NCBI GenBank assembly: GCA_000708835.1
Contig: DF236997.1
Location: 62,001-126,000, forward strand
DNA: 64,000 nt
Reading direction: 5' to 3'
DNA from: Klebsormidium nitens
Lineage: Eukaryota > Plantae > Klebsormidiophyceae
The position numbers were made by a program, and so were the translations under genes. A model generated the notes under the pieces. The model saw nothing but the letters and a program-made list of their open reading frames with translations, was not told the DNA's origin and did no database searches. Shown one piece after another: positions 4,384-63,280 of the stretch (the first letter of the stretch is position 1; every line of letters starts with the position of its first letter).

Positions 4384-7300
4384 ATGGCGCCTCCACGAGG
4401 GCGCTTCGCGACTGCTGCAGAGTGTCTTTGCATCATCCTCGTTGTGCAAGCGGGCTTGGCTGCAGCTAAGAAGCGTCCATCATCTCCTGCAACCATCGAA
4501 TATTTGGCGCCAGCAGATACCTCGGTGCACGAAAGAGGGCTTGTGTCAGAGAGGGTTACGTACCGCTCGATCCTTACAGAGCACTCACGGCATTGGAGCA
4601 ACACAAGTGCGAAACACTTCACCCGCGCTGTGCTTGGTTATGTCACACCTTGGTAAGCGATCAGACCTTTGGTCTCCAATGGTGATTTTCTATCTCTTCC
4701 ATCCTTGACTTGCTTGTAGATCTAGTGTCCTGCTTAGGCTATAAAAACTCCGAACACAGTTGCACGAGAACCATCTGATGCAGCCCTCTTGCAATGCAGG
4801 AACTCAAAAGGGTATGACATTGCCACCAAGTTCGCCAGCAAGTTCACCCACATTAGTCCTTGTTGGTACCAAGTCAAAATCGGGTGAGCAAATGCAGTCC
4901 AGGTTTCGATGTTGTTCTGCTGATCTTGCAAAAATCGTGAGTACTTTCCACCCCGGGATGCCGCCGGCAGTGCACTTTGCAGCTGCCCAACCAATCCTCT
5001 GGCTTCCAGGCGTTGTAAGTTGATTGTTTGGCAGCTCAGGGGGTGTGTCTGCTGCTCTGTCCCTCAGGGCCGATGGGTCCACAACTCTACAGGGGGGTCA
5101 CGATGTGGACCAGGGCTGGATCAAAGATGTCCGCAGCAACGGACAGCCCAGCCCCCGGGTGAGCGCCAGTCTTTGACCTCACCAAGACCCGAGCTAAGAG
5201 CTGCCCCTCGCGGACTGAAAGCTATCACCTTTTGCCGTATGCCTGCCAAGGAGTAATATCACTGCAGTCCCAGCGCTTCGAACCACTGATAGTCACCCAT
5301 CTTTGCCTGGTTGCAGATTGTGCCCCGTCTCATCCTGGAGGGCTCTGAAGGAGCCATGGAGGGATATGAAGGAGCAGCGATGCTGGAATTCAAAAACATG
5401 AAGAAAGCAATTGACCTGATTGTCAAAGAGTGCATGTGAGCTTTGTTTTGCTGTTTTGACACACAGGTCCTCACTTGAAAAGGCTGGAAATGTAGGTCCA
5501 GCAACTTTTAGTCTGATGCTTTGCCACCTACCAATGGGGATTTCTCCACGTAACATTATCCATATCGGCAGGTCATCTGACCTAGTATTCACTGTGGCAA
5601 ATCAAGCATCAGATGGCTCCTGAAGTACAAGCTGACAGGGCCAGGTAGGAGGACGGAGTCGTTTCTGTCAGTCAAGTCCGCTTCGGCTCTGAAAGGCCCC
5701 TCCAAATACTCTATGTAAGTCCATTCGATGGATGGTCAGCTTCTAATCGAGCGCCACCGAAAAAATGGCCAAAAAGGTGCGTCAAGCCTAGTTGCCTCGA
5801 GCTCACCGCAACGCTTTCCTCTTCACCTGAACAGAAATCAGAACTTCGATGGTGTCACCCTGGAGGCGTGGATGGGCTGGTCAGTAGCTGGCGTACTCTC
5901 GGATGCGGAGCTGCGGAAAAAAGTAAGCCGTACTCACGATAGCCCACATCCTCGTTACGTAGGCCCTGCGCAGTCGCAGAGTCTGTCTTCTGAAGAGCGT
6001 AGTCGGTGAGATCTGTATTGATGGGCTGGATCCTGGCGGGCCCAAGTCACTCTTAGGGCTGCTGTGTTGCAGGCGCTCATGTTTGCGGGGGCCCTGGGCG
6101 ACACCCTGGCCAAGATCAAGACGAAGGAGGGCAAGCTCATGCAGCTGGTCTTTGTCATCCCGGTAAGGGGCCCGACCGTCACCTGTAGTGCTTCTGATGC
6201 AGCTTTAGAGCATTGACAAGGTCGTGGTGCAGCACGGTCCGACGTTTTCCTATTTGGGCGGCTTCAAACTCAAATTCCAACGTGCTCTCCCGATTTCAAT
6301 GTCGCATCAAGGAAATCGCATCATTCTTCTTTGACCATCACGAGATGTCTTTCATACCGTTGCACCAGCTTGATCTCAGCAACGTACAAAAGCCTCTCTT
6401 TTGACATTCAAGATGGTGGGATCGGCAAAGACAACGGTGTAGCTGCGGAGCAATCTTCACGAGCCTGGAAGCTATGTAGAGGCTTGACACCTTCCTTCGA
6501 GGGTGTCCGTGTGCATGCTTCAAGCTCACCTGTGCTTCCCATCTTTCTGTTTTCTTTCAGCCACCTCCGGTCTTGGACATGCCCACCAAGTTCGGGGCTG
6601 CCGACCTGGCGTTGCTGGCCCCCCACGTGCATTTCTTCTCCCTCATGACCTACGACTTCAGCAACCCGGCCAGGTGAGGTCTTCCTTACCAGCGACTTCG
6701 AGCTGCCTCGAGCATGTTGCTCATCTTCGCATCGCTGGCTGCCAGAGTCCCCAATCCGAAGCTGCACAAAGGCTCAAACATCTGTTCGCTACTGGTTGCC
6801 GCGCTGCTGGTGCCGAGATGACCCGCTGCGACCCTGGTTGCAGGCCTGGCCCCAACGCGCCCCTTCCCTGGGTGTCGCTGTGCCTCAACATCCTCATCGA
6901 CTCGCCCCCGGAGCTCCAGCAAATGGCAAAAGTACGGCCCTCTCTTTGTGCGGCCGTCAGCTTCTCATGAGTCTGCACGCTCCTCTGCATTATCGCACGC
7001 CTTTCCCGTTGCCCCTGCCCACCAGCCTCGCACGAGTACTTGACTCCGCTTCAACTCTTGCGCTGCCCGTTGAATGCAATTCGAACGTTTCAAAAGCGTT
7101 TCACGTTAAAGCTGCTGCGGGTGGCTGCAGAAGCTGCGCAAGGAGGTGCCGCCGCAGCGGCCGTCGCATGAGCGGGAGCTCAAGAGCGTGCTCACCGGGA
7201 ACGAGACCAACCGGGACATCGCGGACCAGGTGCTGGCGGGCATCAACTTCTTCGGCAACGACTTCCAGCTGCCCAGAGGTACGGCCCGCACCCGCGCCGC

Positions 7301-8267
7301 TCTCGAGCTTCACGCCGTCATACTAGCTCTTTGGCGGACCTTTCAGTACGGAATTCCAAACGGGCCGCAATTCTGGCATCTAGACCGCACCTACGACAAA
7401 GTTTGTAAGTCCGCAAAGGCGAAAAATCATGTTGTGGGCAGACCGTCTCTGCACACCAAGTTTTTCTCTACCAGTTCGTTGTCATGCACTGGAGCCTGCA
7501 GCTTGACCCAGCTTCCTTGCATCCAGGTGGCGGTCCGGTTGTAGGGCACGAATACCTGCACGTGTTGGCCGAGCAGCGACCCAAGGTACGACTGCACCCC
7601 TGCGTCAACCCAGATAGCAGTTAATCGAATCTGCGGCATCGAGCACCGATTTGTTGGTCTTAATAACGATGAGCAAAGGTCCGTTCCAGCTTGTCCGTCC
7701 TAATCGTTCTTGTCTCTGCACCCGGTCTGATTGGTATCAATGTTCAAAACCTGGATGCTTCGAACATTTCCTGACTTCTACGCCACTCGACATACAGCTT
7801 ATATGGGACGCAGAGAGTGAAGAGCATTACTTCGAGTATACAAAAGGAAGCTCCAGGCATAAAGTGTACTACCCGACCTTGAAGGTAAGAACACTTGCCC
7901 GTTCGATACTGTGCGCTTTTCTGCTTGAAGCGGATTGAACGAGCGTTCTTTTCAATGAAAGACCTTGCAGATCGAAGCGGACGGCGGGCTTCCAAAGTTG
8001 CCAGGTTGTTCGCCCCGTCTGGCAGGTCTTGTGTCTTTTTCTGCCCTGTTTGAATTACTTCGACAAAGAGGTGAAGACACATCTCTTTTCTCTGCTGAGA
8101 AATGTGTTTTTGTTGTATTTGCATCCCTATGTCTTTGCACTGAGAGGTTCAATCCATTGTCCTTGCAGTCTATAGAAAGCAGATTGAGCGAGATCAAGAG
8201 ATGGGGTGCGGGCGTTTCCATTTGGGAGTTAGGTCAAGGATTGGACTACTTCTACGATCTATTGTAA
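4384..8267 (+). CDS. CHID1: Chitinase domain-containing protein 1 (GH18-like, probably non-catalytic), signal peptide
   Basis: Hydrophobic N-terminus; VLGYVTPW|[69 protein letters not shown]…VYYPTLK and terminal [18 protein letters not shown] match CHID1. Confidence 0.93.
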
Positions 8268-33265: not shown

Positions 33266-36200
33266 TTACAATCGACCAATCAAGAATTTAAGAGCCTTCC
33301 AAGTAGCCTCCATGTGAGGCGGCAGAGGGGCCTCGACCCGCGTCCGTTCCTCTGTCCTACTCGTGTGGCCTGTTCTACCTTTGCTTTCCTCGCGTGTGCC
33401 CAGCCAGTGCAGCTTGGGCAGCTCGACCCATCGGCAGTGCAGATGCAAGCGCGGCGAGGCCGAGCCGGCATCGCCCACTGCTTCGCCGGATGTCTTAGCC
33501 GACCGTCCCCTGCCCTTCTTGTCGGCATCTAACACCCCTACGGTGCCGTCCTTTTCCCGCCCTTTTCGAACCTGCCCTACGAAGCCGTACTTATAGTCCC
33601 CAACAATCGGACACGAGAGAACAGAGCTGGCGTGCACCCGTAGCTGGTGCTTGCGTCCGGTAAGGGGCTGCAGCTCGAGCCAGGCGAACCCCTGGGGAGA
33701 GGTGGCCACGGTGCGGTACCGCGTCAGGGCGGGCAGCGCAGCCTCGTCCTGCCTGTCGGCTAGCACCATGCGTTCCCCTCTGGCTCCGGTTACGCACTGC
33801 CGCATGAGAGCAGGTTTCAGATCAGGTAGCTCTCAACCGCGAAACCGAACATTGATATCAAAGCATTGGGCCCATAGAAAGACAAGGAGGACGCAGCAGA
33901 AAATACAAGGCGTTGCACCACAACCACGAGCTTCTTGCAGACAGTAGACTGCAAAGCTTTGACTTCGACAAGTTGTTGAATATCACGAAAACGTTTGTTA
34001 GAACACCTTACTAGCTGCTTGCAACCTGCCAGAACATTAGCCTAATTTTAACGAAATATAGGCGGAGAGGAACGACGAGAGGAGCCTATGCTATAAGGCA
34101 ACCGTAAAGCGCAACCTACCTTCTTGACAGGGGCATCGATAACGCCCTCGGCTTGTGCAGGGATCCCTTCCACCAGGGCCCAGTATGCGCGCTGCAATCC
34201 CGTCCGTTCTGCAGCCTCCCCATCACCGACATCCCTGCTTATGGCACTTGCCGTTTTGTGACGGAACAGTCCTGTGACGGCCACCGCACTCTGCTCTGAG
34301 AGGGCCACGATGAGGCAGCCACTTGTGTCCTTGTCCAGCCGGTGCACCTGCGGAAGCGAAGCGCCGCCCGCCAGGAGTTTGTGTGAAAACGACCGCCTAT
34401 TCTGCTACCAAATCGACTATCCGCCGAAATTCTGTGCCAGCAAACAGAAGGTGAATGTGCGGTGCCCACTGAACAAAACATAGCACTGAAAGCAGGGGTC
34501 GAACACGGCCTCGTTCTACCATACGACCAAGGTCATACTTCGACAGTTAGAAACTGTAAAGAAGCAGTTGGATTGTGCTCTTTCGGCACAAGAAGTATCC
34601 GGAGACTGATCTGCGAGCCCATTCAGGTACCTGGTCCTTGCTTTGGTATCTTACGTACTCGGAAATGGGGTACTGGGGACCTTTCGAGGGACTCAAAACC
34701 AGGGTCGGAGTCGAGACGACGATGTCTTACTTGGGCTCGTACTGGGGAAACGCTTGTCATTTTGAGCATCTGGAACCCTGCCTTTGGCATATGGGTATTT
34801 GCATCTGGTTCACGCAAAGAGCCACCTGGTCAAGGTGCATTCAAATGATTGGGGGTGAGGTAGACGGTTGCTCACTAGCCGTGGCCGCTCTCCATCGCTT
34901 TTTGAGAATGCCTCTTGCAGTAGGTCATCCAGAGACTCTCGGATGTTGCGGCCGCCCTGCAGAGGGAAGATGACCTTGGTCATGTGACATGCCGGACAAG
35001 CGACTCCGAAGCAGAAAGAGTGTCCAATCTCTCTTCAATCTTGGAACCAGTCAAGATGTCAGCATCCAAAGAAGGTGAAGGTACCTTTCTCCCATCTAGG
35101 GCGTCTCACTTCTAGCCTCCAGAGACATTAAGTTTCTGTCCAGTTTACTCTGACAATAAACTAGCCAGCCATGACCCCCAGGGCCCTCACCTGGACCGCC
35201 TGCCCATGCGCTTTGTTGATGACCACCACATGCTCGTCCCGGAACAGCACCCTCTCCCGCAGCTCCTGAACCTCGGGCCGTACCACCGCAGGATCGCCCT
35301 TGGAAGCCGCTACTCTTGTAGTTCCCGACCGCCTGGCTGCCTGTTCAAGGGCCGGCTCTTCTCTTGGGACCTGCCCTGGTTTGGGGGCTGCTCTTGGCTC
35401 CATCGCTCGAGCATGGATCACGAGGACGCTGCCAGGGGGCAGGGCTTCGGCATCTGAGATGCGCCGCAGTGTAGCTGGAGAAACAAAAGGGATAGCCTAG
35501 TCATGCGGCTGAAGGAGGGCCCCAGACAGCATAGTAGCCCGAGTACTGGCACATTGCGTCCCTTGGGGTCTGGGGAAAGCAGGAGTCACATGTTGGTGGT
35601 GGTGCAGCTTGAGCTGAAAGCACTGGCCGGCAGCTGGAGAACGGTTTCGGCAATGTTTTCTCGCGCACCACCACTTTGGAGCAGCTGGTGCCACTTGTCA
35701 TTAGAGCCTGTAATGAGCTGTGTCATCTCCTCCATTGATCGCAGGGGGGGCTTTGTGCACCTCACCTGGTTGATCTGGGCTCTCTGCTGTCTCCACAAGG
35801 CGCACCTCCCGTTTGCGAAACAGCTTGTGAATGACGGCGTGGGGCAGCTGCGGCTGGCACTTGCGCAGCCACTGGAAGGCGCCAGTAGTGCTGGAGGCGC
35901 TGTCTGCATTCGGGCCTGCCTCCCACTCGTCCAGCTTCTGGGGCACAGGGGGCATCCACACCCATTCTCGCGGGTCTCGCAGGAAGCGTCCCGCAGGGGG
36001 GGACTCAAAGCTGATTCCAGATTCAGATTCTGCCTGCGCGTCCAGGTCTTTTGTGTGCTTTGGGCGGACTGATGGGGTCCGATTAAATGCACAATTTCCA
36101 CTATCCCCCGCACCACCACCATCACCACCTTTTGCAGCACCAGTCAAGATCTCGGGCAAATGCGACTTGCTCAGGGGAGAGTAATGCTGGCGGAGAATGT

Positions 36201-36297
36201 GGGCGCCGATTGCCGCTCGGTGTCGCTGAGCGTCACAGGCATGTGATGAGACTGATATCGCGCACTCTTGAAGCAGCCTCGCAAACCTTGCAGCCAT
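33266..36297 (-). CDS. RluA/RluC-family RNA pseudouridine synthase, probably mitochondrial (similar to plant 'RNA pseudouridine synthase 4')
   Basis: Arg/Ala/Ser-rich N-terminus, S4-like AFQWLRKCQPQLPHAVIHKLFRKREVR, VINKAHGQAVQGG, catalytic VHRLDKDTSG, RAYWALVEG, LELQPLTGRKHQLRVH, PIVGDYKYG, LHLHC. Confidence 0.93.
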
Positions 36298-36653: not shown

Positions 36654-36726
36654 GAGTTCATAAAACCTAGGGGTTGCGTTCCCCCAGGGTTTGGGTCACG
36701 TTCGACGGCTGCCACCTTTGCGCCGT

Positions 36727-36742
36727 GCCGGGGGCCCCCGGC
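36727..36742. repeat. Perfect 16-bp palindrome GCCGGGGGCCCCCGGC
   Basis: Self-complementary sequence read directly. Confidence 0.9.
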
Positions 36743-36907
36743 CTACATTAGTATTCGAGTGCGGGGGAAGTTAGGTATCTTATCCCGAGACCTATCTTGC
36801 TTCCAAGCGGTGTGTCGTCCCCGTTTCGTCACAAAACCAACGTGAATGCCAAGAGCTGAAGGCAGCAACGTAGTGACGTATCTCTGCAAAGGTGTTCTTG
36901 CGCGCGT

Positions 36908-39900
36908 ATGTTTTCTGTGTTGCTGAGGAACTTGAAGATGGCTTGTGTCACCACATCTTCAATACAGCAATCATGCCGGCTGCATTTCACGCCGGCCGGA
37001 CCTCAACGTTGCAATCAGAAGCCGCTCAGCTTGGTGCAATCCAACTTATCTGTTGAAGGCTTCCGCAGGCTGGCTCTTGACTGGCGAGTGTTGAGAACGA
37101 CGGCCAGTAAAGTGGGCAGCCCCAACAGGAAGGAAGACGCTTTGCCTACCAGGGTTCGTTTTGGGGGAAAAACACAAGCGGCTTGTTGCCTCAGAAGTCC
37201 ATTGGCAACCAGGCAAGTGGACGTCTAGCAAGGCCGCATGATTTCCCCCTTCATACCTGTCTTCTTTGCTAGCTGAAGATGCAGGTTTTGTGAGAAGCAA
37301 CTCTAGGATGGGGGCCAACCGGTAACATGGAGGGAATTGGTAAAATCACTCGTCGAACCCCCCAGACTTCTGGGCGAGCACTGCGCCAGCCATGGCAAGT
37401 TTGAATAGGCCCTTTCCTTGCCCTCAGAATTGTGGGACGTTTTGTTCAGTACTCAGGGCCTGTCTAGAATAAAAGCCGTGAGTTGTCGTGCAATTGTCTA
37501 GTTACCGCCGCTTTGAATATTTGTAGCTCGTGACTAAAAAGGACTCGCCCCCTCAACTCGGCCGATTCAGCACGAGTTTTCAAATGCTGACCGTTGATGA
37601 CTTGAAGATTACTGAACAAGCTTCGGCTCCCCCTGCAGCTCAATGGCGGCCGACCTCCACACGCCTCATCTTCCACACGGTGACTCTCTCCGGGCGCCCG
37701 TACATGCGTCTCGTCCGCAATGCACCTCTAGCGCGGCCCCCGCCCCGGCCCCTGTGGACGAGACCGGGCGGCCCCTGATCAAGCTGGAGCAGCTGGTGCG
37801 GGGCCGGTCCTTTGCTGACGTCAGCCGCCTGCTGGAGAGTCCGCCATACGGGTTACGCGTGCGGGAGAGCGTGGCGCTGCCAGAACTGTACAGCGTGTCG
37901 TACGACATGCTCGCCATTATCCGCAAAGAGTCCACGTGGCAGCTGCCCGAGGTGCGGCAGGCGCGGGGGATCATTCTGGAGAAGGAAACCAACAGGTAGG
38001 GCCAACTCTGTCTCACCAAAACCCCTTTCGCTTGCTGCTGGCTAGGCGTTAGAACCGCGGGCCGCTCGAATCAATTATAGGTAAAGCTGAGGAGGTAAGT
38101 GGCACCTCCTTTGAGCACAGAGTCTGGAGAAAGTTGGGTTCACGGCGAAATTCAGTGCACAGACCAAGCACCAGGTTGCTTGTTTGAGCGAAAGGGAATA
38201 TCGAAGACAATGGAGCAGTAGTGCCGCGCATTTATCTTCTTGCTTTCAGCAAAGAGGAGTAGAGTTTTCGGCATACGCCATACTATTGTCTCATAACGAT
38301 GGTTTCCGAGGACGCCTCCGACATCTGTCTGAGGCAGTTCCCTAAGGTCTTCTTTGCAAACCAAACGCCTCATTCCCATGGCGGCTCGGTCTGCGGCAGG
38401 GTGGTGTGCCGGCCGTTTGACAAGTTCTTCAACGCGGGGGAGCCGGACCAGAAGCGAGATCCTCTCGATTGGGCCACGGCGCGCGTCTACGAAAAGCTCG
38501 ACGGCTCTCTCATGAAAGCCTACTTCTACAAGGTGGGGGGAAGCACGTTATTGCTCATGAGACCACACCTCTGGATCAGAACCAGATTATAGACTGGCGT
38601 TCTGCGTGCTTTACAAACATCTTAAATAACGGTGCTCCGAAATCATCCAAAACCTTCATCGACTGTGTCCGCGTACGGTTTCAGAGGGTTGTCCACGGCT
38701 CCCAACGGCGTCTGACAGCGACAGCTTGGCTTGGCAGGGCGCGTGGCGGGTCGCCACCAACCGGACCGTGGACGCCTCGGACGCGAAGATCCACATGGCA
38801 TCTAGCGACCGGACGTTCCGGGACGTGTTTGACGAAACGTGGCCGCAGTTCCCGGCGGGGCTGCACCCCGACTATACTTACATGTTCGAGCTGTAAGGGG
38901 ATTGACCTACCATCTGAAGAAGGCGGCAGTATGCCTTTGAGGAGAAGATGTAGTTGCTGGAACTTTCGTTGAGCTTCGTAGAGTCACGATCCACGTATGT
39001 GATCCGTCCCCGGAATATCCTTTGATGTCACACATTCAAATCAGAGAAGGTAGGGATCCATGGATTGCTTCTTTACTAGCAGGCGTCAGGGGAGCACGTT
39101 CAGTCTCGAAAGAAGTTTGAAACAATTACCATGTGCTTCTCTGTGGAGCTACAGTTTCGGGTTAACGTCTGGGCCTGCTCGTTGCCATAATATCAGTATA
39201 TTTATGCGGGTGCTGACCGGGTTTATATCGCCAGCTTTTCAACCGTTTGACACAACGCTCAACATGAGCATGGGTAGAATCGAAAAGGCTCACCTCTTGA
39301 CTACGAAACGACTTATGATCTGGCGTCCTTTCCTGAACGCTCCTCTTGTTGTTCTTTTTTCGCTGCAGCTGCCATCCTGAGACGCGGGTGGTGGTGCCGC
39401 ACGCGCAGGGCCGGCTGGTGTACCTGGGCGCGCGACACATGCCGACCCACCGGGAGGTCTTCCCCGAGGACCTGCCCGTCCCCGGGCTTGACCTGCCCCA
39501 GCGCTTCGACATCGCGTCCGAGGAGGACTGCCTCGCCTTGGCCGCCAAGCTGCCCTTCTCGGAGGTGCGCGAGTGGCTCAGAGACTGAGCTGCATCTGAA
39601 AGTATACCCTCCCTCTTGAGGAAAGCATAGCAGATGGTTTCTTGAGAAGGTACTCTATGCGAAGCAGAACCTCCGCAGAACCTCAGGTCCGGGCTATAGT
39701 TTATGCAAAGTGCGTGTGCCCAGTACGAAGAAGCCAAATTTTCGCGCGCGATCGCTCTCCACAGAGTTGCTCGACAGCTTGCGCGAATCGCAGGAGGGCT
39801 TCGTGGCGGTAGACTCCATGTTCCGGCGCGCCAAGATCAAGAGCCCCGCCTACCTGTGGCTGGCGCATGCCGGCTCCAACCCGAGCAAGGACCTGCGTAC

Positions 39901-41014
39901 CGTGGTCTTCAACGTCCTCCTACAGGTCAATCTCTGCCACCCAACCTGTGCTTCCTTCTCGGTTGTGGATGCAGTAGACTTTTAAGATCGAATGACGAAG
40001 GACAGCCCTCTTCTGTCAGATTGTTCCGCCCGGCCGTATGTGTATCTCTTGCAAGACCTTTTGAGTTGCTCTGACCGCTCTTTGGCTGCTGCAGGGAGAG
40101 GTCAGCGAGGCGTCCCTTCTGCCCGGGATCGGCCCACTCTTCGAGCCAATGCAAGTCGCTCTCGACCAGCTGCTCGACCACGGTAAGCAGCCAAAGTTCT
40201 TGCTTGATTCAGTTGCTTTCGCACACCCTCACGATGCCACCGTCGTCTCGACTCCTTGAATGTTGAGTTCGCCTGTTTGCGTGCAGGTGCCTTCAGCAGC
40301 TCGGTCGATCTCAGATTCATTCTTTAGCTCTCCTGTTCCAAATGACGTTCTCCTTCCTGTGCCTCATTGCTCATTTGCCGTTTGTAGTGCTGGAGGCCTG
40401 GACGAAGGTGAAGGACATTGAACTGCAAAAAGACTTCGCCTTGACGCTCCAGAAGGACTACCGCCACGTGATGAGCATGTGAGGGGCACACAAAGCCGCG
40501 CGCTTTATTTTGACGACTGCCATCGACCTATTTCTTAATGGTGTCCTCAACTTGCGTTTGATCAGAGCGGCAGGATCTCTCGGACTTTCCTGATTTAACG
40601 GCGATGAAAGCAATAGATCTCGTAGACGCAGCGGACATTTGGAATCGGCATCAGCCAGGTGGGTCATTCTGCCAGGACTGTCGCACTGCAGGCTCCTGCT
40701 TCCGGACGCCTTAAGGACGGCCTTGGTTTGAGCTTCGTAGTCGGACCCTTGCCCGCAGGTTCTTCCACCTCCGGAAAGAAGTGCAGCGCCGCGCCACTGT
40801 GCTTCCACCCAACCCCACCTTAAGTGACGCCGACGTCAAGCAGATGGCTATGGAATATTGGCTGGCGTCCCAAGACGAGGGGGCGGCCGTGAAAGCGGCC
40901 CTGGCCTTCGAGATAGCACTGCCGGAGATCTCGCAAACAATGCTAGATGGGTTTTACGTCCGCCAGGGAGCCGTGCAGGCAGACTTGGACGCCGCCCGTC
41001 TGGAAGAGGAATAA
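36908..41014 (+). CDS. Stand-alone T4 Rnl1-type ATP-dependent RNA ligase (RNA_lig_T4_1-like) with putative transit peptide; 9 exons
   Basis: Exons 36908-37212 (tentative), 37639-37995, 38400-38532, 38738-38892, 39369-39564, 39794-39925, 40095-40182, 40388-40478 and 40759-41014 splice in phase. QARGIILEKETNRVVCRPFDKFFN parallels T4 Rnl1 CRGIMFE…RPMEKFFN; motif I EKLDGS (Lys codon 38494), YMFEL, motif IV EGFV, motif V KIKSP. Confidence 0.88.
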
Positions 41015-42196
41015 TGTTTGATCATCTTTCGCCTGACAAGATGGGTATTACCCTTGACTACTGTAGGGAGCGAGATTTGCTGCCAAGCAACGTGCATGAG
41101 GCGTCAGGGATCGATGGCAGAGTTTTTATGTCCTTCTCGATGCTTGTAGCAAATCATTGTCAGAGCAGCCACGTTGAGGATGGTGTTAACCTGAAGCCCG
41201 GAGGCGCGTGAATCTTCCTTGTTTCTAACCGATATCAACGAGGCATGTCGGCTGCAAGTGATGTCCAATAAGAACTATTGTTTTAAAACTCCTGTAATTC
41301 AAGGCCGGGCAGTGTACCTAGAAATTAGCAATATTGACCTGTATGGATCGGCCGTTTGTGATTGCTGATTGCCAGGCAGACGCGCTTCGGTGAATCGAAG
41401 CTGGTGGACGGCACCTGGGACACATGCACCCTTTGAAACTAGATCCTCAATGGTGCATGCAGGCAGACTGTAATTGCAGTGGCTAGGCGGAAGTGACCGA
41501 ATATGTTTCAATTGCCACGTACACGATCATGCCATCGTACCACATAATCTTGATGATCGACGTGCCAGGGTCGATCAACATATCTTATGTCTCAATCTGT
41601 GCTATACCATTGGCGCAATTGAGTGACGGCTTCCGCAGTCTGCATCGTTGACCAATGGATGAGAACTTGAAGTTTACTACAGCCTAGCCTTGAACACCTG
41701 GTATCGATGCGCGGTTGTTACTTCACAACCAAAACGTACTATACCTATGTAGATGATATTTTTGCAATCACTCGGGTGTGACTGGAATGCAGAACAATGA
41801 TGCTTTTCAATACTTGCAAATCATAGAACCATGTAGCCTCCGCATCTTCGACGCTACAAGTTATATGGTAAGGAATGCTGAAGGTTTTAAGAATGTGGCC
41901 CGGGCGGATATGTTGCAAAGTTTTTGCGTGCCGAAAGAACTGACCATGATCTCTTCGAGTGCATCAAACAGCTGTTGTTAGGGGAGCCTCCACGACTACG
42001 TTCTAGATGCAGAATATTGACATGCAGACCGTGTATCCCTGAAACTTCCAGTAACCTTTGCTTACCAAGCATAAGTCGAACCTGCAGCCTGTAAAGCATA
42101 CCTCCTTGTTTAAACATCATCCCCCTGCACGGCCGTCTGAACCTATGGAGCGACTTTGCGAGCACTACCATAACTAGCTGACAGGTAGCTGATTAT

Positions 42197-45100
42197 CTAA
42201 GAGACGGCGGAGGGTGTGCCCTCAGCCCCGGGCTGGTGCGCCTCACCCGGCGAGCTTTCACGTGGCGGCTCACTCCTTGTGCCGTCCCCGTCATTTCTAT
42301 CACTCTCCTGCGTTTCTAAAGAGCCTGCTTGCTCTTCCAGCTTCTGGATCTTCTCTTTCTTGCTATCCGACGGCCAGGCTTCCTCTGCCGCACCGCCGTC
42401 TCTCCTGGGACTGGCCGCGTTCCCCGTGAGCGTGGGCCCCGGGGTGGACGGCCCCGTGTCGCCCCCACTGTGCGCCTCTCCCGACACAGCCGCGCCGCCC
42501 TGTTTCGGCACCTCGAGCGCAGGGAGCTCCTGCTGCTCGGCCTGCTCGGCTGGCACAGCTGGTGCTGCAACGGGCGGGCCTGCCTGCGCCGCCTCTCCCG
42601 CACCGGGGCTGGGGTGTAGGGCCGGCACGGCGGGCTCCTGGGAAGGGCCTGCTAACACCAGCTGTTCCGGAGGTGCCCACTGCCTGCGCGGCTCGAGCCA
42701 GCCGGCGACTGCCGCCGGCTGCAGGCTCTCCGCGGCCCGGACGCTATGCGGCCGGCTGGCCCCACGTATACTATGATCTGCAGTCGCGGTTTGTCCCGCT
42801 CTGTCGGGGCTGGGCCTGTCCTGATGGAATAGTTGAGGCACGCTTGAGGGCGGCCTCTCTTTGCGGACCTGGCTGGGTCCTGCTGCAGGCGGGGCCGCCG
42901 CTGCCCGCCAGGTGGGGCCGCGACTGCGAACTCGGAGGAGCTCCTCCTGAAACACACCACGGAGAACTGTGAGACCGAGCAATGGCAGAAAGCATCTGGG
43001 CCTACGAGGAGGCTTAGGTATAAGAGATTACTCCAATACTGAGCCGGCACATCTTCGAGGCCCTCTGAGAAATCAGAGCCCTCGGTGTGTCACTGCGGTC
43101 AGTCGGGTACAGGGAACATTCTCGAGGACTTTGATGCAGCAAAGACTTCATTCATTTTCAATCAAGGGGAAGTGAGTTCCAAGGGTCGGAACTGGCAGAT
43201 TCGCTCCAAGTACGTATCCAATTGTCCGACGCAGCAAGTGGGGCTTGTTGAGCTTGGCAAACACAATGGCCTTTCGAAGGCTGGATTCGGCTTGCAAAGT
43301 GCGCGACTGGTTGAAGAAGGCACTCAGCAAGTACGTTGCAACCGGGACATGGGGCGCTAAAAACTGCCAGAGTCCCATCCTGGCAGAGACTACCAACTGC
43401 TACCAATGGCTGGCGAAAAATGGCCAGACGGGCCTGTGCATGCTGACCTGGAGAGCCCTGTTGTCGGCTGCGAGCTGCGCACACTGTTCGCTCAGGCGGA
43501 GAAGCTCTCCGCGCAGAGCCACATTCTCCTTGTTCAAGTGGTCTACGCGCCCGCTCAGCTCCTCGCACTCCGCCTGCACCGCAGAGTCCGCTGAGCACCC
43601 CCATTGATTCCAGGCCTTTCAAAGCAAAACAAGCATGCCTTCGCTGCTTCTGTGCATCATTCTATGGCCCCTTTACTTGCTCTGAAAGGAGGAAGGAACG
43701 CTCTGTGGAAGAAACACGCTGCCAGCCCTTACCTGCTTGCGGAGTCGAGACCGGCGTGCAGATTCTCGGTTGCTTTGCTTCCTCCGCTGCTTTCTCACTT
43801 CCTTATCGTCCTGCAGAACCGACGGGGTTGTTCAGCCAGGCACTAGTGTTCTCGCACAAGGCACGACTCTAGACAGCTAGGCTTGGATATCATGCACAGG
43901 CAGAGTAAGTAAGGCATATCAAGACGCTGCATGCAGTCTTCCATCGAAAAAGCTCTGGCTCTAAGAGTGACCTCCAGCCCTTACCACATCCCCTTTCCCC
44001 TCGCCGCCTCCCGAGTCAGCCCCCTGGCCCATGCGTAACCACATCTCATTTTCGCTTCCTGGATCCCCAGTCTGCAGACCAGGGATCATGGACAAGCCCT
44101 TGACGCTTGCGGTTGGTTTGCTGGGGCCGTTTGCAAAGTCCTGTGAGGATGCGGAGGCGAACGCACCTCTCCCCTGGTAGGGAGGCAGGCCTGTGCCCCG
44201 TGCTGCAATGGCTGTGGAAGCAAAGGGCATAATCTCAATGCAAAGTATCACACAAAGACCTCAATCTGCCACAATTCGCGCAACCGATTTCAGCAAGCTA
44301 ACTTTCAGTTACTCTTCAACAATGTCAACCACACATTAGAACCGAATCCTCATCGTTCGCAATTGTGACCTTTTCGTAAATGCTGACAAGTTTACTTGCA
44401 CTTGCTACAGCAGCACCCTCCCCACGTAGTGCTCACCATCCATGCCCATGTGCTCGTAGCTCCTTTTTCTCAGGATCTGCAGGCCCGGTGCGAGGTCCAT
44501 GTCCACTCGGGCCTTATCATCCTCATGGCTGCTCTCACTGCCCCCGCTGCTGTGGCTCTGCGATTCCCCATTGGACTTAAGCAGGTTGCCCAGGCTGCCC
44601 AGGCTGCCCTGGCCTCGCTGCAGGGCCGTGCCCCCGCTCAGCTGCCCACTCAGCTGCCCGCTCAACTGTCCAGGCAACCACCCCTGCACAACAAGGGGCG
44701 GGATCAGCCAAACCACACATGCGGTCGTGCATAAGATCCTTCAAAGTACACCGAATCAGCCTGGTCTCAGAGCGTCTTCCAGGTATGCCCCCAAAATTGA
44801 AGATGGATGCAGAAGAGTAGGCAAGCGGCTGATGCAAACATCTATGACTGAAGTGTCTTGAAGTAATTTTGCTTTCGAGGTTACAACTTCACGCACTTCG
44901 TCTTTGCCAAAGACGAAAGATTTGCCTACCTTGACACGAGCTATGTTGGGATCAAAGGCCGATGCAGGATTCTGAGTAAAGGGGCCATACCCAGCCTGCA
45001 AAGGACATAAGAGTGTAAGAGCAGCTGTTTGATAATCCGCGCAAGAGCCAAACCAGATGCCGAAACAACCGCTCACTGTTTGCAGCATCAGAGCTCTCTC

Positions 45101-46028
45101 TGAAACAATACTTCTCAGCACTTCCCACCTAAACTGCAAAATTGAGCGCTCACCGGAAAGAAGGGACCGGGAAGGCTACCGCCGAAAAGAGTGGGGCTGA
45201 CGTTCTGCACACATTGAGTGAGCTAAGCATGTTAGCATGAGTAAAATGGAGGCCCTTATTCACATTACAAGGATGTCCCCTTCTCAAACCGTCAGAGGGG
45301 GACCCCTTCAATGTTTATATGACCCGATGTGGCTGGTGCCTTGCACTGCAACTCCACACCACATACTAGGGCTTCAGCATTCACACAACCGCCACTTGCA
45401 CAAATATCCAACCTGTTGGAGTGGTCAAGCATGCACGGTCCGCTTTTCCAAGTTCCGTGGAAGTTGTCAGTAGCTATGACAGAGCATATCGATTGGCCAC
45501 AATTACTCTTGTAGTAAATAAGTCACCTGGCCTGCCCACGGGTTTGGCGGGGGTCCCAGTGGAGAAGCAGAATTTGGCGCAGTTGCCTGCCGCTGGCCCT
45601 GACCATAAAAAGCCTGCAAAATCCAGGGCATGTCAAGATGCAAACCAGTAACTTTCATTGGTTGGCACTTGCCCCTGCATCCAGATAGTCAACCTCTGTG
45701 CCCCATCAAAAAATCCTGAGATACAACCCCCTCCATATCCTCAAAGAACAAGTTGAAGGTTGATCTGCACTCTCGCAACTCGGGCAAACCACTTTTGCCG
45801 AGCTGTGAAACCGTAACTCACAACCAAGTTGTCCTCCCAAATGAGAGGAAGTGCAGCAGGGTCTGATGGTACCTGGAATGCTGCTTGCCAATCGTAAGCC
45901 GGTTGCATCTCTTTCATAACCATGCCGTTTGGAAAGTCCGCCTTTGGCGTTCCACCAAGGTTGGCGTCTTGTGCTGCAGTGGGACCTCCCAAGGCCACGC
46001 CGCCTTCGCTGTCTTCTTCCATCTTCAA
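42197..46028 (-). CDS. GBF: G-box-binding factor, group G bZIP transcription factor
   Basis: N-terminal MFMR-like YDWQAAFQ|AFYG…PPPNPWAGQ; basic region RKQRRKQSNRESARRSRLRKQ (~43734-43811) spliced to zipper AECEELSGRVDHLNKENVALRGELLRLSEQCAQLAADNRALQ; long Pro/Ala/Glu-rich C-terminus. Confidence 0.9.
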
Positions 46029-61982: not shown

Positions 61983-63280
61983 ATGGCAAGTGGACCAAAC
62001 TGGAAGACTGACATGAAGCTGCAGAAGTTGCATGAAACACTCCTCACGGCTTTGGCAAAACAACCAGGCAATGAGAGGTGTGCTGACTGCGGCGGCCGAT
62101 TCACAAGGTTCGCTTCCATATCATTAGGGGTGTTCTTATGTAACAGGTGTTATGGTCTGCATCGAAAAGTAGGTGCACATGTGACCAGGACAAAATGCAT
62201 AGGCCTGGATGCGTGGTCACCAGAGGAAGTAGAGAAAATGAAACGAATAGGAAATGTTCGGGCCAACGCTCACTGGGAAGGTATGTCGCACCATCAAACT
62301 TGTTTATTGAAGCCGCTTGATTGTTGACGAAAGTGTGTGCAGCCATCAAGATAAGTTGGTAGGAAAAATGTTGTAGTCGTATGCCATTGCCTTTTGGTTG
62401 GCCCTTTCCTTTGCATCACCACAGTGTTCTGTCTCCGCAGCAAATAGACTGGGTTCTTTCATTATGGAGTCAAGAAGCTACAATAGTTTCCTTGATAAGA
62501 GCATCACCTGATGCCGTATCGGCTTCAGCTTGCCATGTTGAGGTGTTGCAATTTGCCGTAGTTGCTTTTGATTGCTGCTACTATGTCAATCCAGGCAACA
62601 TACCGACCGGATGGCAGAAGGTTCGACCAGACTCGTCCGATGAGGCTGTGGAGGCTTGGATCCGGAAGAAGTACGAGCACAGACTATTTGTCAATGCTTC
62701 GAAGGACCAAGCATCGGTATATGTGCAGGGAGCGATTCCCATCGTGGGAATAGGGCAAGGTAGGTCGTCTTCTTTTGGGGCCTTCCAGCTACCCAAAGGC
62801 AGAGGCGAATTCTTCAGAATCGAGCTTGCAAACTCTAGTATCTCTGTTTTCACTTTCTAGAACGCTGCTCTGTGGAGCTTATGAAGCAATCAACAAGGCA
62901 GCATGATACCCTTATGTATTCATGTGAGGAGGGTTGACTTCTCAGATTCTTCAGTTAGAACTGCTTTGGGGGACCGAGAGAACTTTCATCGAACGACCGC
63001 TCTTTTCACAACAGAAAGATCACCAATCCCTCCCTCAAGTGCGCGAAAGGGCTCCGAAATTGGAGACGTGGGATCGCAGACAACAGTGGACGATAGCTTT
63101 GCTTTGGCCCCAAAGTACAAAAGCCGGGCGGTGGATCTCAATATACCGTCACTGAGTTCGGAATTGCCGAAGATACGAACTAATCACATGGTTTCTGCTG
63201 ATGAACATAAGATAGACCCTTTTGCCGACCTTGAAGAACAATTTGGGGAATTTCAAAGTGCTCACAAATCGTGCACATGA
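61983..63280 (+). CDS. ArfGAP (SMAP/AGD5-like) with C-terminal adaptor-binding motifs; 3 exons
   Basis: CADC-x16-CNRC-x4-R zinc finger with arginine finger (YGLHR), LDAWSPEEV, GNVRANAHWE|G…WIRKKYE; DPF and QFGEF near the C-terminus. Confidence 0.92.

Follow-up and report, generated by a model that had tools for sequence, protein, structure and literature searches.

A long-kept, expressed nuclear gene for a stand-alone Rnl1-family protein in the streptophyte alga Klebsormidium nitens

Introduction

Work on stand-alone Rnl1 RNA ligases has dealt with those of phages, and the fold is familiar from eukaryotes mainly as a domain of the large tRNA splicing ligases. A gene in the nuclear genome of the streptophyte alga Klebsormidium nitens raises the question of how a plain enzyme of this kind came to be there and what it may do. 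The gene, KFL_000480200, lies on scaffold DF236997.1 and occupies, with its 9 exons, positions 36908-41014 (+) of the window analyzed here, a stretch of 64,000 nucleotides (positions 62,001 to 126,000 of the scaffold) whose numbering is used wherever no other contig is named. It is publicly annotated as a "hypothetical protein", and its product bears the automatic UniRef name "T4 RNA ligase 1-like N-terminal domain-containing protein". The original prediction, made from the DNA letters, took it for an intact gene encoding a domesticated ligase of phage or bacterial type, horizontally acquired long ago, provided with introns and kept functional. It had supposed the gene to be transcribed and to lack annotated counterparts across plants: a spliced transcript is present and no other plant protein is among the matches listed in our searches, and the protein itself was already in the databases, under an automatic name only. 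The gene and its domain were thus public before this work; new here are the verified gene model, its conservation, its phylogenetic placement and a hypothesis on its targeting. Literature searches turned up no paper that treats stand-alone Rnl1 genes of algae, of fungi or of giant viruses. The full explanation that we regard as best, and as probably correct, is that KFL_000480200 is a horizontally acquired nuclear gene that is expressed, is maintained by selection and encodes a stand-alone Rnl1-family ligase.

A spliced and expressed gene of nine exons

The gene model was built by joining open stretches at splice signals, which gave eight exons from an ATG at 37643, and then from transcript contigs over 36700-41300. 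These contigs came from four public runs of four studies, labeled RNA only by guess; the runs did sample spliced RNA, because intron-less contigs of KFL_000480200 have no other possible source. All 8 introns are removed in high-depth contigs from the four runs, with a depth of 100-560 over the exons and of 0-10 in contigs that cover introns. The nine-exon frame is open over 570 codons, and, read from the second ATG (36938), it encodes exactly the public 560-amino-acid protein (P0129 in our alignments). Apart from the choice of start ATG, the nine-exon model is the public gene model, and the intact gene that had been read from the sequence is confirmed.

Seven of the introns are GT-AG and the first is GC-AG. 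This first intron (37213-37638, +; 426 nt, GCAAGT...TGCAG) is bordered by a joint, 37209>37636, that contains three ambiguous bases, of which only the +3 position yields a canonical intron end pair (GC-AG). Exon 1 (36908-37212, +) holds the ATGs at 36908 and 36938, the latter being the public start, and the first part of an N-terminal extension; it is joined to exon 2 at 37639 in all four runs.

Relationship to T4 RNA ligase 1

As the original prediction would have it, the whole protein matches Pfam PF09511 (RNA_lig_T4_1; 57.6 bits, cutoff 28.3 bits, E 2.2e-15); exon 3 matches this family by itself (E 2.9e-5). A phmmer search against all solved structures in PDB returned only the T4 Rnl1 entries 2c5u, 9do4 and 5tt6 (E 2.6e-7); PDB searches with single exons gave chance matches only. 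An AlphaFold (AF2) model of residues 131-560, made with 67 relatives as input, has a mean pLDDT of 86.3, and Foldseek with this model ranked T4 Rnl1 first (E 1e-15), followed by fungal Trl1 ligase domains. In the predicted model the nucleotidyltransferase domain is followed by an all-helical C-terminal domain of the T4 Rnl1 type, which agrees with the helical domain proposed earlier.

Residues were mapped to T4 Rnl1 by alignment via intermediate relatives. Eleven of 12 T4 catalytic residues, the ones given as essential in the mutational literature, are kept in the algal protein: R201, K219, F221, K243, D245 and G246 of P0129 align with T4 R54, K75, F77, K99, D101 and G102, and E306, E373, G374, K386 and K388 with T4 E159, E227, G228, K240 and K242. 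The exception is K119, which is replaced by Asn. The motifs named beforehand (RGIILE, RPFDKFFN, EKLDGS, FEL, EGFV and KIKSP) are all present and aligned to T4 Rnl1 residues. They are distributed over exons 2 to 6, all on the + strand like the rest of the gene. Exon 2 (37639-37995) contains the remainder of the N-terminal extension, the internal ATG at 37643, the start of the region shared family-wide (codon 148, 37775, in the family alignment) and RGIILE, whose Arg at 37964-37966 aligns with T4 R54. Exon 3 (38400-38532) encodes RPFDKFFN, with the equivalents of T4 K75 and F77, and motif I, EKLDGS, in which the predicted AMP-accepting lysine lies at 38494-38496. Exon 4 (38738-38892) ends in motif III, FEL, with the T4 E159 equivalent Glu at 38888-38890, and exon 5 (39369-39564) covers the middle of the nucleotidyltransferase domain. 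Motif IV, EGFV (39794-39799), and motif V, KIK, with its lysines mapped to 39833-39835 and 39839-39841, are in exon 6 (39794-39925), where the helical C-terminal domain sets in. This domain continues through exon 7 (40095-40182), with the family-conserved motif GE.SE, and exon 8 (40388-40478), with the family-conserved motif QKDFAL; exon 9 (40759-41014) encodes the last helices, which are modeled less confidently, and ends in the TAA stop (41012-41014).

PF09511 is the sole Pfam domain over the 560 residues, and neither a kinase nor a 2H/CPD (cyclic phosphodiesterase) domain was found in them by Pfam. Because both are absent, this is not an enzyme of the Trl1/AtRNL type, a point on which the original prediction was right. 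Fungal Trl1 and plant AtRNL include both a kinase and a cyclic phosphodiesterase domain, neither of which the algal protein has; Trl1 aligns with the algal N-domain only, the algal C-terminus being the Rnl1-type helical domain, and by PDB sequence search the algal protein matches T4 Rnl1, not Trl1. Trl1 and AtRNL are too distant for a joint alignment and were compared by structure and PDB sequence search instead of in the tree described below.

Identity to T4 RNA ligase 1 itself (RnlA, gp63; PDB 2C5U, 5TT6, 9DO4) is only about 20%. Unlike the T4 enzyme, the algal protein is extended by 137 residues at its N-terminus and has a longer C-terminal part, and its gene is nuclear, has 8 introns and has no polynucleotide kinase-phosphatase (Pnkp) gene seen beside it. 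Two further differences tell against equating the two enzymes: the algal protein falls well under the cutoff of the NCBIfam T4 RnlA equivalog TIGR02308 (55.6 bits against 242.25), and the Asn at the T4 K119 position is common to the whole subfamily, phage members included. Because of this replacement and of the low equivalog score, the choice of substrate may differ from that of T4 Rnl1. Judged by its sequence, the protein is a member of the Rnl1 family outside the T4 RnlA subfamily proper.

Conservation in related algae

Orthologues of KFL_000480200 were identified on contig L175, from a Logan assembly, and on contigs L003 and L004, from two JGI metagenomes. All eight downstream exons are present in them, with boundaries identical to those of K. 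nitens, and similarity at the DNA level is limited to the exons. Protein identity is about 71% for L175, in which all exons are intact, and about 62% for L003/L004; for exon 9 it is 56-60% in the two orthologues. The ratio of nonsynonymous to synonymous substitution rates (dN/dS) is 0.24 in both comparisons, over about 400 codons. KFL_000480200 is kept under purifying selection. A metagenome scan yielded no further intron-bearing orthologue and nothing above about 38% full-length identity; some of its loci, microbial contigs from gut samples, were left out of the further analysis. L003 and L004 share a deletion of 1 nt in the equivalent of exon 5 (L004, about 7810-7820), which shifts the frame of its last few codons and is followed by conserved later exons; the missing base may be a genuine lesion or a mistake of the assembly.

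The chromosomal surroundings are those of a host gene. KFL_000480200, with a GC content of 0.62 in its exons and of 0.78 at third codon positions, is flanked by intron-bearing host genes for a starch branching enzyme, a pseudouridine synthase, a 593-amino-acid protein and a GRF zinc-ribbon protein, and the downstream gene on the opposite strand is syntenic in K. nitens, L175 and L004. The gene stood at its present chromosomal place, with the same introns, in the ancestor of at least three Klebsormidium-like algae, and it is not a recent arrival.

Giant-virus inserts have been reported in K. nitens (PMC5294986). That KFL_000480200 belongs to such an endogenous insert was rejected in view of its 8 introns, the intron-bearing host genes around it and the synteny of its downstream neighbor. 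Contamination or an assembly artefact was likewise rejected by the introns, host flanks, synteny and transcripts.

Phylogenetic position

The family is dominated by sequences from phages and bacterial metagenome-assembled genomes (MAGs), with 1436 matching phage records as well as contigs from IMG/VR, and identity between these relatives and the algal protein is 30-41%. When a profile weighted toward the closest relatives was searched, about a dozen clusters (E <1e-112) stood apart from the phage type, whose E values were about 1e-102 or weaker. The only named members of those clusters are K. nitens and the chytrid Nowakowskiella, to which a search with the algal protein added two Boothiomyces chytrids; K. 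nitens and three chytrids are the only named carriers among the best matches of the two database searches. No other plant protein was among the matches listed in the two protein searches, both word-seeded, that listed K. nitens. Absence from these searches is weak evidence, because word-seeded searches can miss true relatives; from the matches listed for the relative P0003 the K. nitens protein itself was missing. One group of IMG/VR proteins (L197-L200, L202, L206, L209, L213), several of them from named giant-virus MAGs (GVMAG), consists of Rnl1-like proteins of about 395 amino acids that form a deep clade of their own and match the algal protein over its first 200 or so residues only, at 30-34% identity.

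A careful maximum-likelihood tree was made of 85 phage, bacterial, viral, chytrid and algal sequences (LG+C20, rooted on T2 RnlA), its bootstrap not having fully settled; the algal orthologues entered it as sequences stitched from exon-wise tblastn matches, in which X marks gaps and the frameshift. All three algae group together in one clade (100/100) on a long stem. This clade lies inside a clade of 10 sequences (99/93), together with the chytrid proteins P0015, P0182 and P0190 and the uncultured P0003, P0006, P0007 and P0008, which in turn lies inside a clade of 16 sequences (99/96) without any bacterial-MAG or IMG/VR member. The larger clade was still free of such members after more viral sequences had been added. 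A three-residue insertion, KES..xP.LY, is common to the alga, P0003, P0006, P0007, P0008, P0009 and P0015 and is not found in the phage type.

The algal gene is thus not nested in the phage or bacterial groups, where the original prediction had looked for its origin. That prediction stands as to the age of the gene and of its introns, given the shared boundaries and the dN/dS of the orthologues, and likely as to horizontal acquisition; its phage or bacterial donor does not. The possibility of a cyanobacterial or endosymbiont origin was also considered and was rejected, the cyanobacterial sequences sitting in another clade.

The closest named counterparts are those of the chytrids Nowakowskiella sp. 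JEL0407 (HK098_006337) and Boothiomyces (HDV06_003897 and HK103_004675). With the uncultured P0003, P0006, P0007 and P0008 these share with the algal protein the 99/93 clade, the insertion, a stand-alone architecture and the status of uncharacterized "hypothetical proteins", and the chytrid genes are, like the algal gene, seated among host genes. They differ from it in their identity of about 35-41%, in the lack of introns and, except for P0008/P0126, in the lack of an N-terminal extension. The "T4 RnlA family RNA ligases" of about 360 amino acids from uncultured phages and bacterial MAGs, of which that of Pseudomonas phage vB_PpS_SYP is an example, resemble the algal protein over the whole family length (33-41% identity), with the same motifs in both domains; they differ in forming separate clades, in lacking both the N-terminal extension and the KES..xP.LY insertion, and in their operon-like phage contexts.

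Source of the gene

The contexts of the uncultured relatives bear on where the gene came from. P0009, a member of the 16-sequence clade, is encoded on L011, a contig of 26% GC with genes for ATG8, dUTPase and D123/R2K proteins. The octamer AAAATTGA, which is the mimivirus early promoter motif, stands 38 nt upstream of the P0009 gene; it occurs at L011:1724-1731 and 6235-6242, the second occurrence also being 38 nt before a gene. The contig of P0003 is dense and intronless, with genes mostly lacking a Pfam match, and P0006 adjoins kinase and exostosin fragments. For the neighboring proteins of the virus-like contigs no relatives were found in IMG/VR and mostly no Pfam family. Among the ESM Atlas clusters nearest by features are Nucleocytoviricota clusters of 414-419 amino acids, which as a clue to the donor are a lead only. 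The gene for P0007 is part of a tightly packed run of genes without introns (L007:1432-5715), whose other products are a tRNA-splicing endonuclease, NDK, an RRM protein and the peptidyl-tRNA hydrolase PTH2; such company hints at the cutting and rejoining of tRNA.

An old horizontal acquisition in the ancestor of these algae appears likely from the sequence comparisons. The source would be a small pool of Rnl1 genes common to chytrid fungi and to uncultured sequences, some of them on giant-virus-like contigs, and the donor may have been a giant virus or another eukaryote.

Several observations weigh against this account. The giant-virus nature of L001, L007, L010 and L011 is an interpretation of their gene density and content. 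The named giant-virus MAG proteins, which make up a distant clade of their own, are not the nearest relatives of the algal protein. With 1.3 changes per site the algal stem branch is long, and the amino-acid make-up deviates; for these reasons the placement within the clade is unsure. An approximately unbiased (AU) test did not reject algae and chytrids as a single clade (p-AU 0.27), and L007 and L010, which carry P0007 and P0006, could be compact eukaryotic DNA.

The last two points favor the view that the gene is an old eukaryotic one, descended vertically and lost nearly everywhere except in Klebsormidiophyceae, certain chytrids and a handful of protists yet to be sampled, with giant viruses having acquired it from their hosts. 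The position of the chytrid genes amid ordinary host genes, and the 8 old introns and syntenic neighbor of the algal gene, fit this view as well. It would, however, require very many independent losses, and no other plant, animal or named protist protein is among the top matches listed. Moreover, the chytrid genes have no introns, algal and chytrid proteins share only about 35% identity, and rooting the tree on T4-type RnlA leaves the clade embedded among sequences of viruses and bacteria. We consider vertical descent unlikely.

Direct entry of a phage or bacterial Rnl1 gene into the algal nucleus, with introns gained later, is suggested by the overwhelmingly phage and bacterial membership of the family. 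By phmmer alone the best matches of the algal protein are phage- and bacterial-type proteins of about 360 amino acids and 35-41% identity, and the best single match, P0016, is on a phage-like contig. This is nevertheless not the best reading, because the algal clade sits within the 16-sequence clade and that clade is without bacterial-MAG or IMG/VR members, even with the added viral sequences. The absence of the KES..xP.LY insertion from the phage type and the placement of the cyanobacterial sequences in another clade argue in the same direction. We regard direct phage or bacterial descent as quite improbable and as the least supported of the three origins.

Proposed function

If the horizontally acquired protein is a ligase, its conserved residues and fold suggest how it would act. 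The motif I lysine, K243 of the 560-amino-acid protein, would take AMP from ATP to form lysyl-AMP and pass the AMP to a 5'-phosphate RNA end, which a 3'-OH end would then attack, sealing the break. In T4 Rnl1 the C-terminal domain directs the enzyme to broken tRNA anticodon loops. Because the helical C-terminal domain of the algal protein matches that of T4 Rnl1, its likely job would be the sealing of broken tRNA or other structured RNA, after a separate enzyme has healed the ends. Ligase activity, substrate and ATP use are all read from sequence and model, and the genes beside KFL_000480200, the part of the genome that the search covered, include no Pnkp-like end-healing partner; both facts detract from this proposal. 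A ligase and a polynucleotide kinase-phosphatase form a classical repair pair. Such a pair occurs in the closest relative from a cultured phage, Pseudomonas phage vB_PpS_SYP, whose ligase gene has a polynucleotide kinase-phosphatase gene directly after it (L006:2995-5114).

The N-terminal extension and the compartment of the enzyme

The phage and chytrid relatives begin at the position of algal residue 138. The 137 residues before it have a net charge of +9, include 26 Ser/Thr, 16 Ala and 14 Pro, and are basic and rich in Ser, Thr, Ala, Pro and Arg, with one acidic residue in the first 40. Because this composition matches that of import sequences, import into an organelle is suggested, and we judge the chances about evenly divided on whether the extension is such a sequence, placing the enzyme in chloroplasts and/or mitochondria. 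Exon 1 is included in all transcript contigs extending into the 5' part of the gene, and the splice acceptor 4 nt before the internal ATG at 37643 is kept in L175. A point to the contrary is that no conservation of the exon 1 sequence was detectable in L004. One other clade member, P0008/P0126 (L009:5001-6533), carries an N-terminal extension of its own, of 42-77 residues, basic and rich in Ser and Asn, and its sequence suggests that a possible targeting sequence was added independently in a second lineage.

Taken to its full extent, the organellar reading is that Klebsormidium and its relatives import a virus-derived, Rnl1-type ligase that seals tRNA breaks into their chloroplasts and/or mitochondria, which would provide the plant lineage with a dedicated pathway of organellar RNA repair. 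We offer this tentatively and as rather unlikely in its entirety; we know of no such organellar RNA repair pathway in land plants.

A serious possibility, though not one that we would expect to prevail, is that the enzyme acts in the cytosol or nucleus and that the extension is a disordered linker or regulatory tail. There the enzyme might defend against ribotoxins or anticodon nucleases secreted by microbes, or back up tRNA splicing. Translation from the in-frame ATG at 37643 could yield a shorter, non-imported form of 467 amino acids without exon 1, and in one relative a gene for tRNA-splicing endonuclease lies 2 kb from the ligase gene. Bdelloid rotifers, too, have horizontally acquired RNA ligase genes that are induced by a fungal pathogen and are proposed to repair toxin-cut RNA (PMC11258130). 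Against a cytosolic or nuclear site stand the import-like composition of the extension, the joint of exon 1 to exon 2 in every transcript contig that reaches the 5' part, and the retention in L175 of the acceptor before the internal ATG.

The rotifer ligase genes are the nearest published parallel that we found to the algal gene, which they resemble in encoding an RNA-ligase domain, in their non-host origin and in being retained and expressed in a eukaryotic nucleus (PMC11258130). They differ in their animal host and in that the paper centers on another ligase domain, PF09511 being only among the domains for which trees were made; the likeness is one of description.

T4 gp63/Rnl1 also promotes tail-fiber attachment. 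That the algal gene is an inactive relic, or has a role other than ligation, might be argued from the loss of T4 K119 to Asn and from the ligase activity being a prediction from sequence and model, but is highly improbable given the 11 of 12 catalytic residues kept, the dN/dS of 0.24 over about 400 codons in two comparisons and the steady expression in four studies, while the Asn, being subfamily-wide and shared with phage members, is not decay of the algal copy, and a tail-fiber role is meaningless in an alga.

Untranslated regions and neighboring genes

The 5' mRNA leader (36791-36907, +) is delimited by transcript contigs that begin at 36791 (X5), 36842 (X1) and 36850 (X12), and the 3' untranslated region (+) runs from 41015 to at least 41300, with contigs extending to 41267-41300. 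An upstream open reading frame of 26 codons in the leader (ATG 36846, stop 36924-36926, +) overlaps the main ATG at 36908 out of frame. This frame, 36846-36926, is contained in the X5 contig starting at 36791 and lies at the extreme 5' end of that from X1. Its effect might be to lower translation or to favor downstream ATGs.

Upstream, about 600 bp separate the ligase gene from a divergently transcribed gene for an RluA-type pseudouridine synthase (551 amino acids, PF00849, about 33266-36297, -). These genes for two RNA-acting enzymes may share a promoter region; their pairing is not retained in L004. The downstream gene for the 593-amino-acid protein (about 42200-46022, -) has no Pfam match in the public table, and one exon of its L175 counterpart matches bZIP_1.

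Conclusions

What emerges at this locus is a well-supported annotation together with a testable hypothesis, and no new kind of system. A plain two-domain enzyme of the Rnl1 type, as its sequence and model predict it to be, is a long-kept and expressed nuclear gene of a streptophyte alga. KFL_000480200 belongs to a small subfamily common to chytrid fungi and probably to giant viruses. If active, its product would provide a eukaryote-derived Rnl1 enzyme for comparison with the laboratory workhorse from T4. If it is both active and targeted to organelles, RNA repair would be a function that early land-adapted algae gained through gene transfer.

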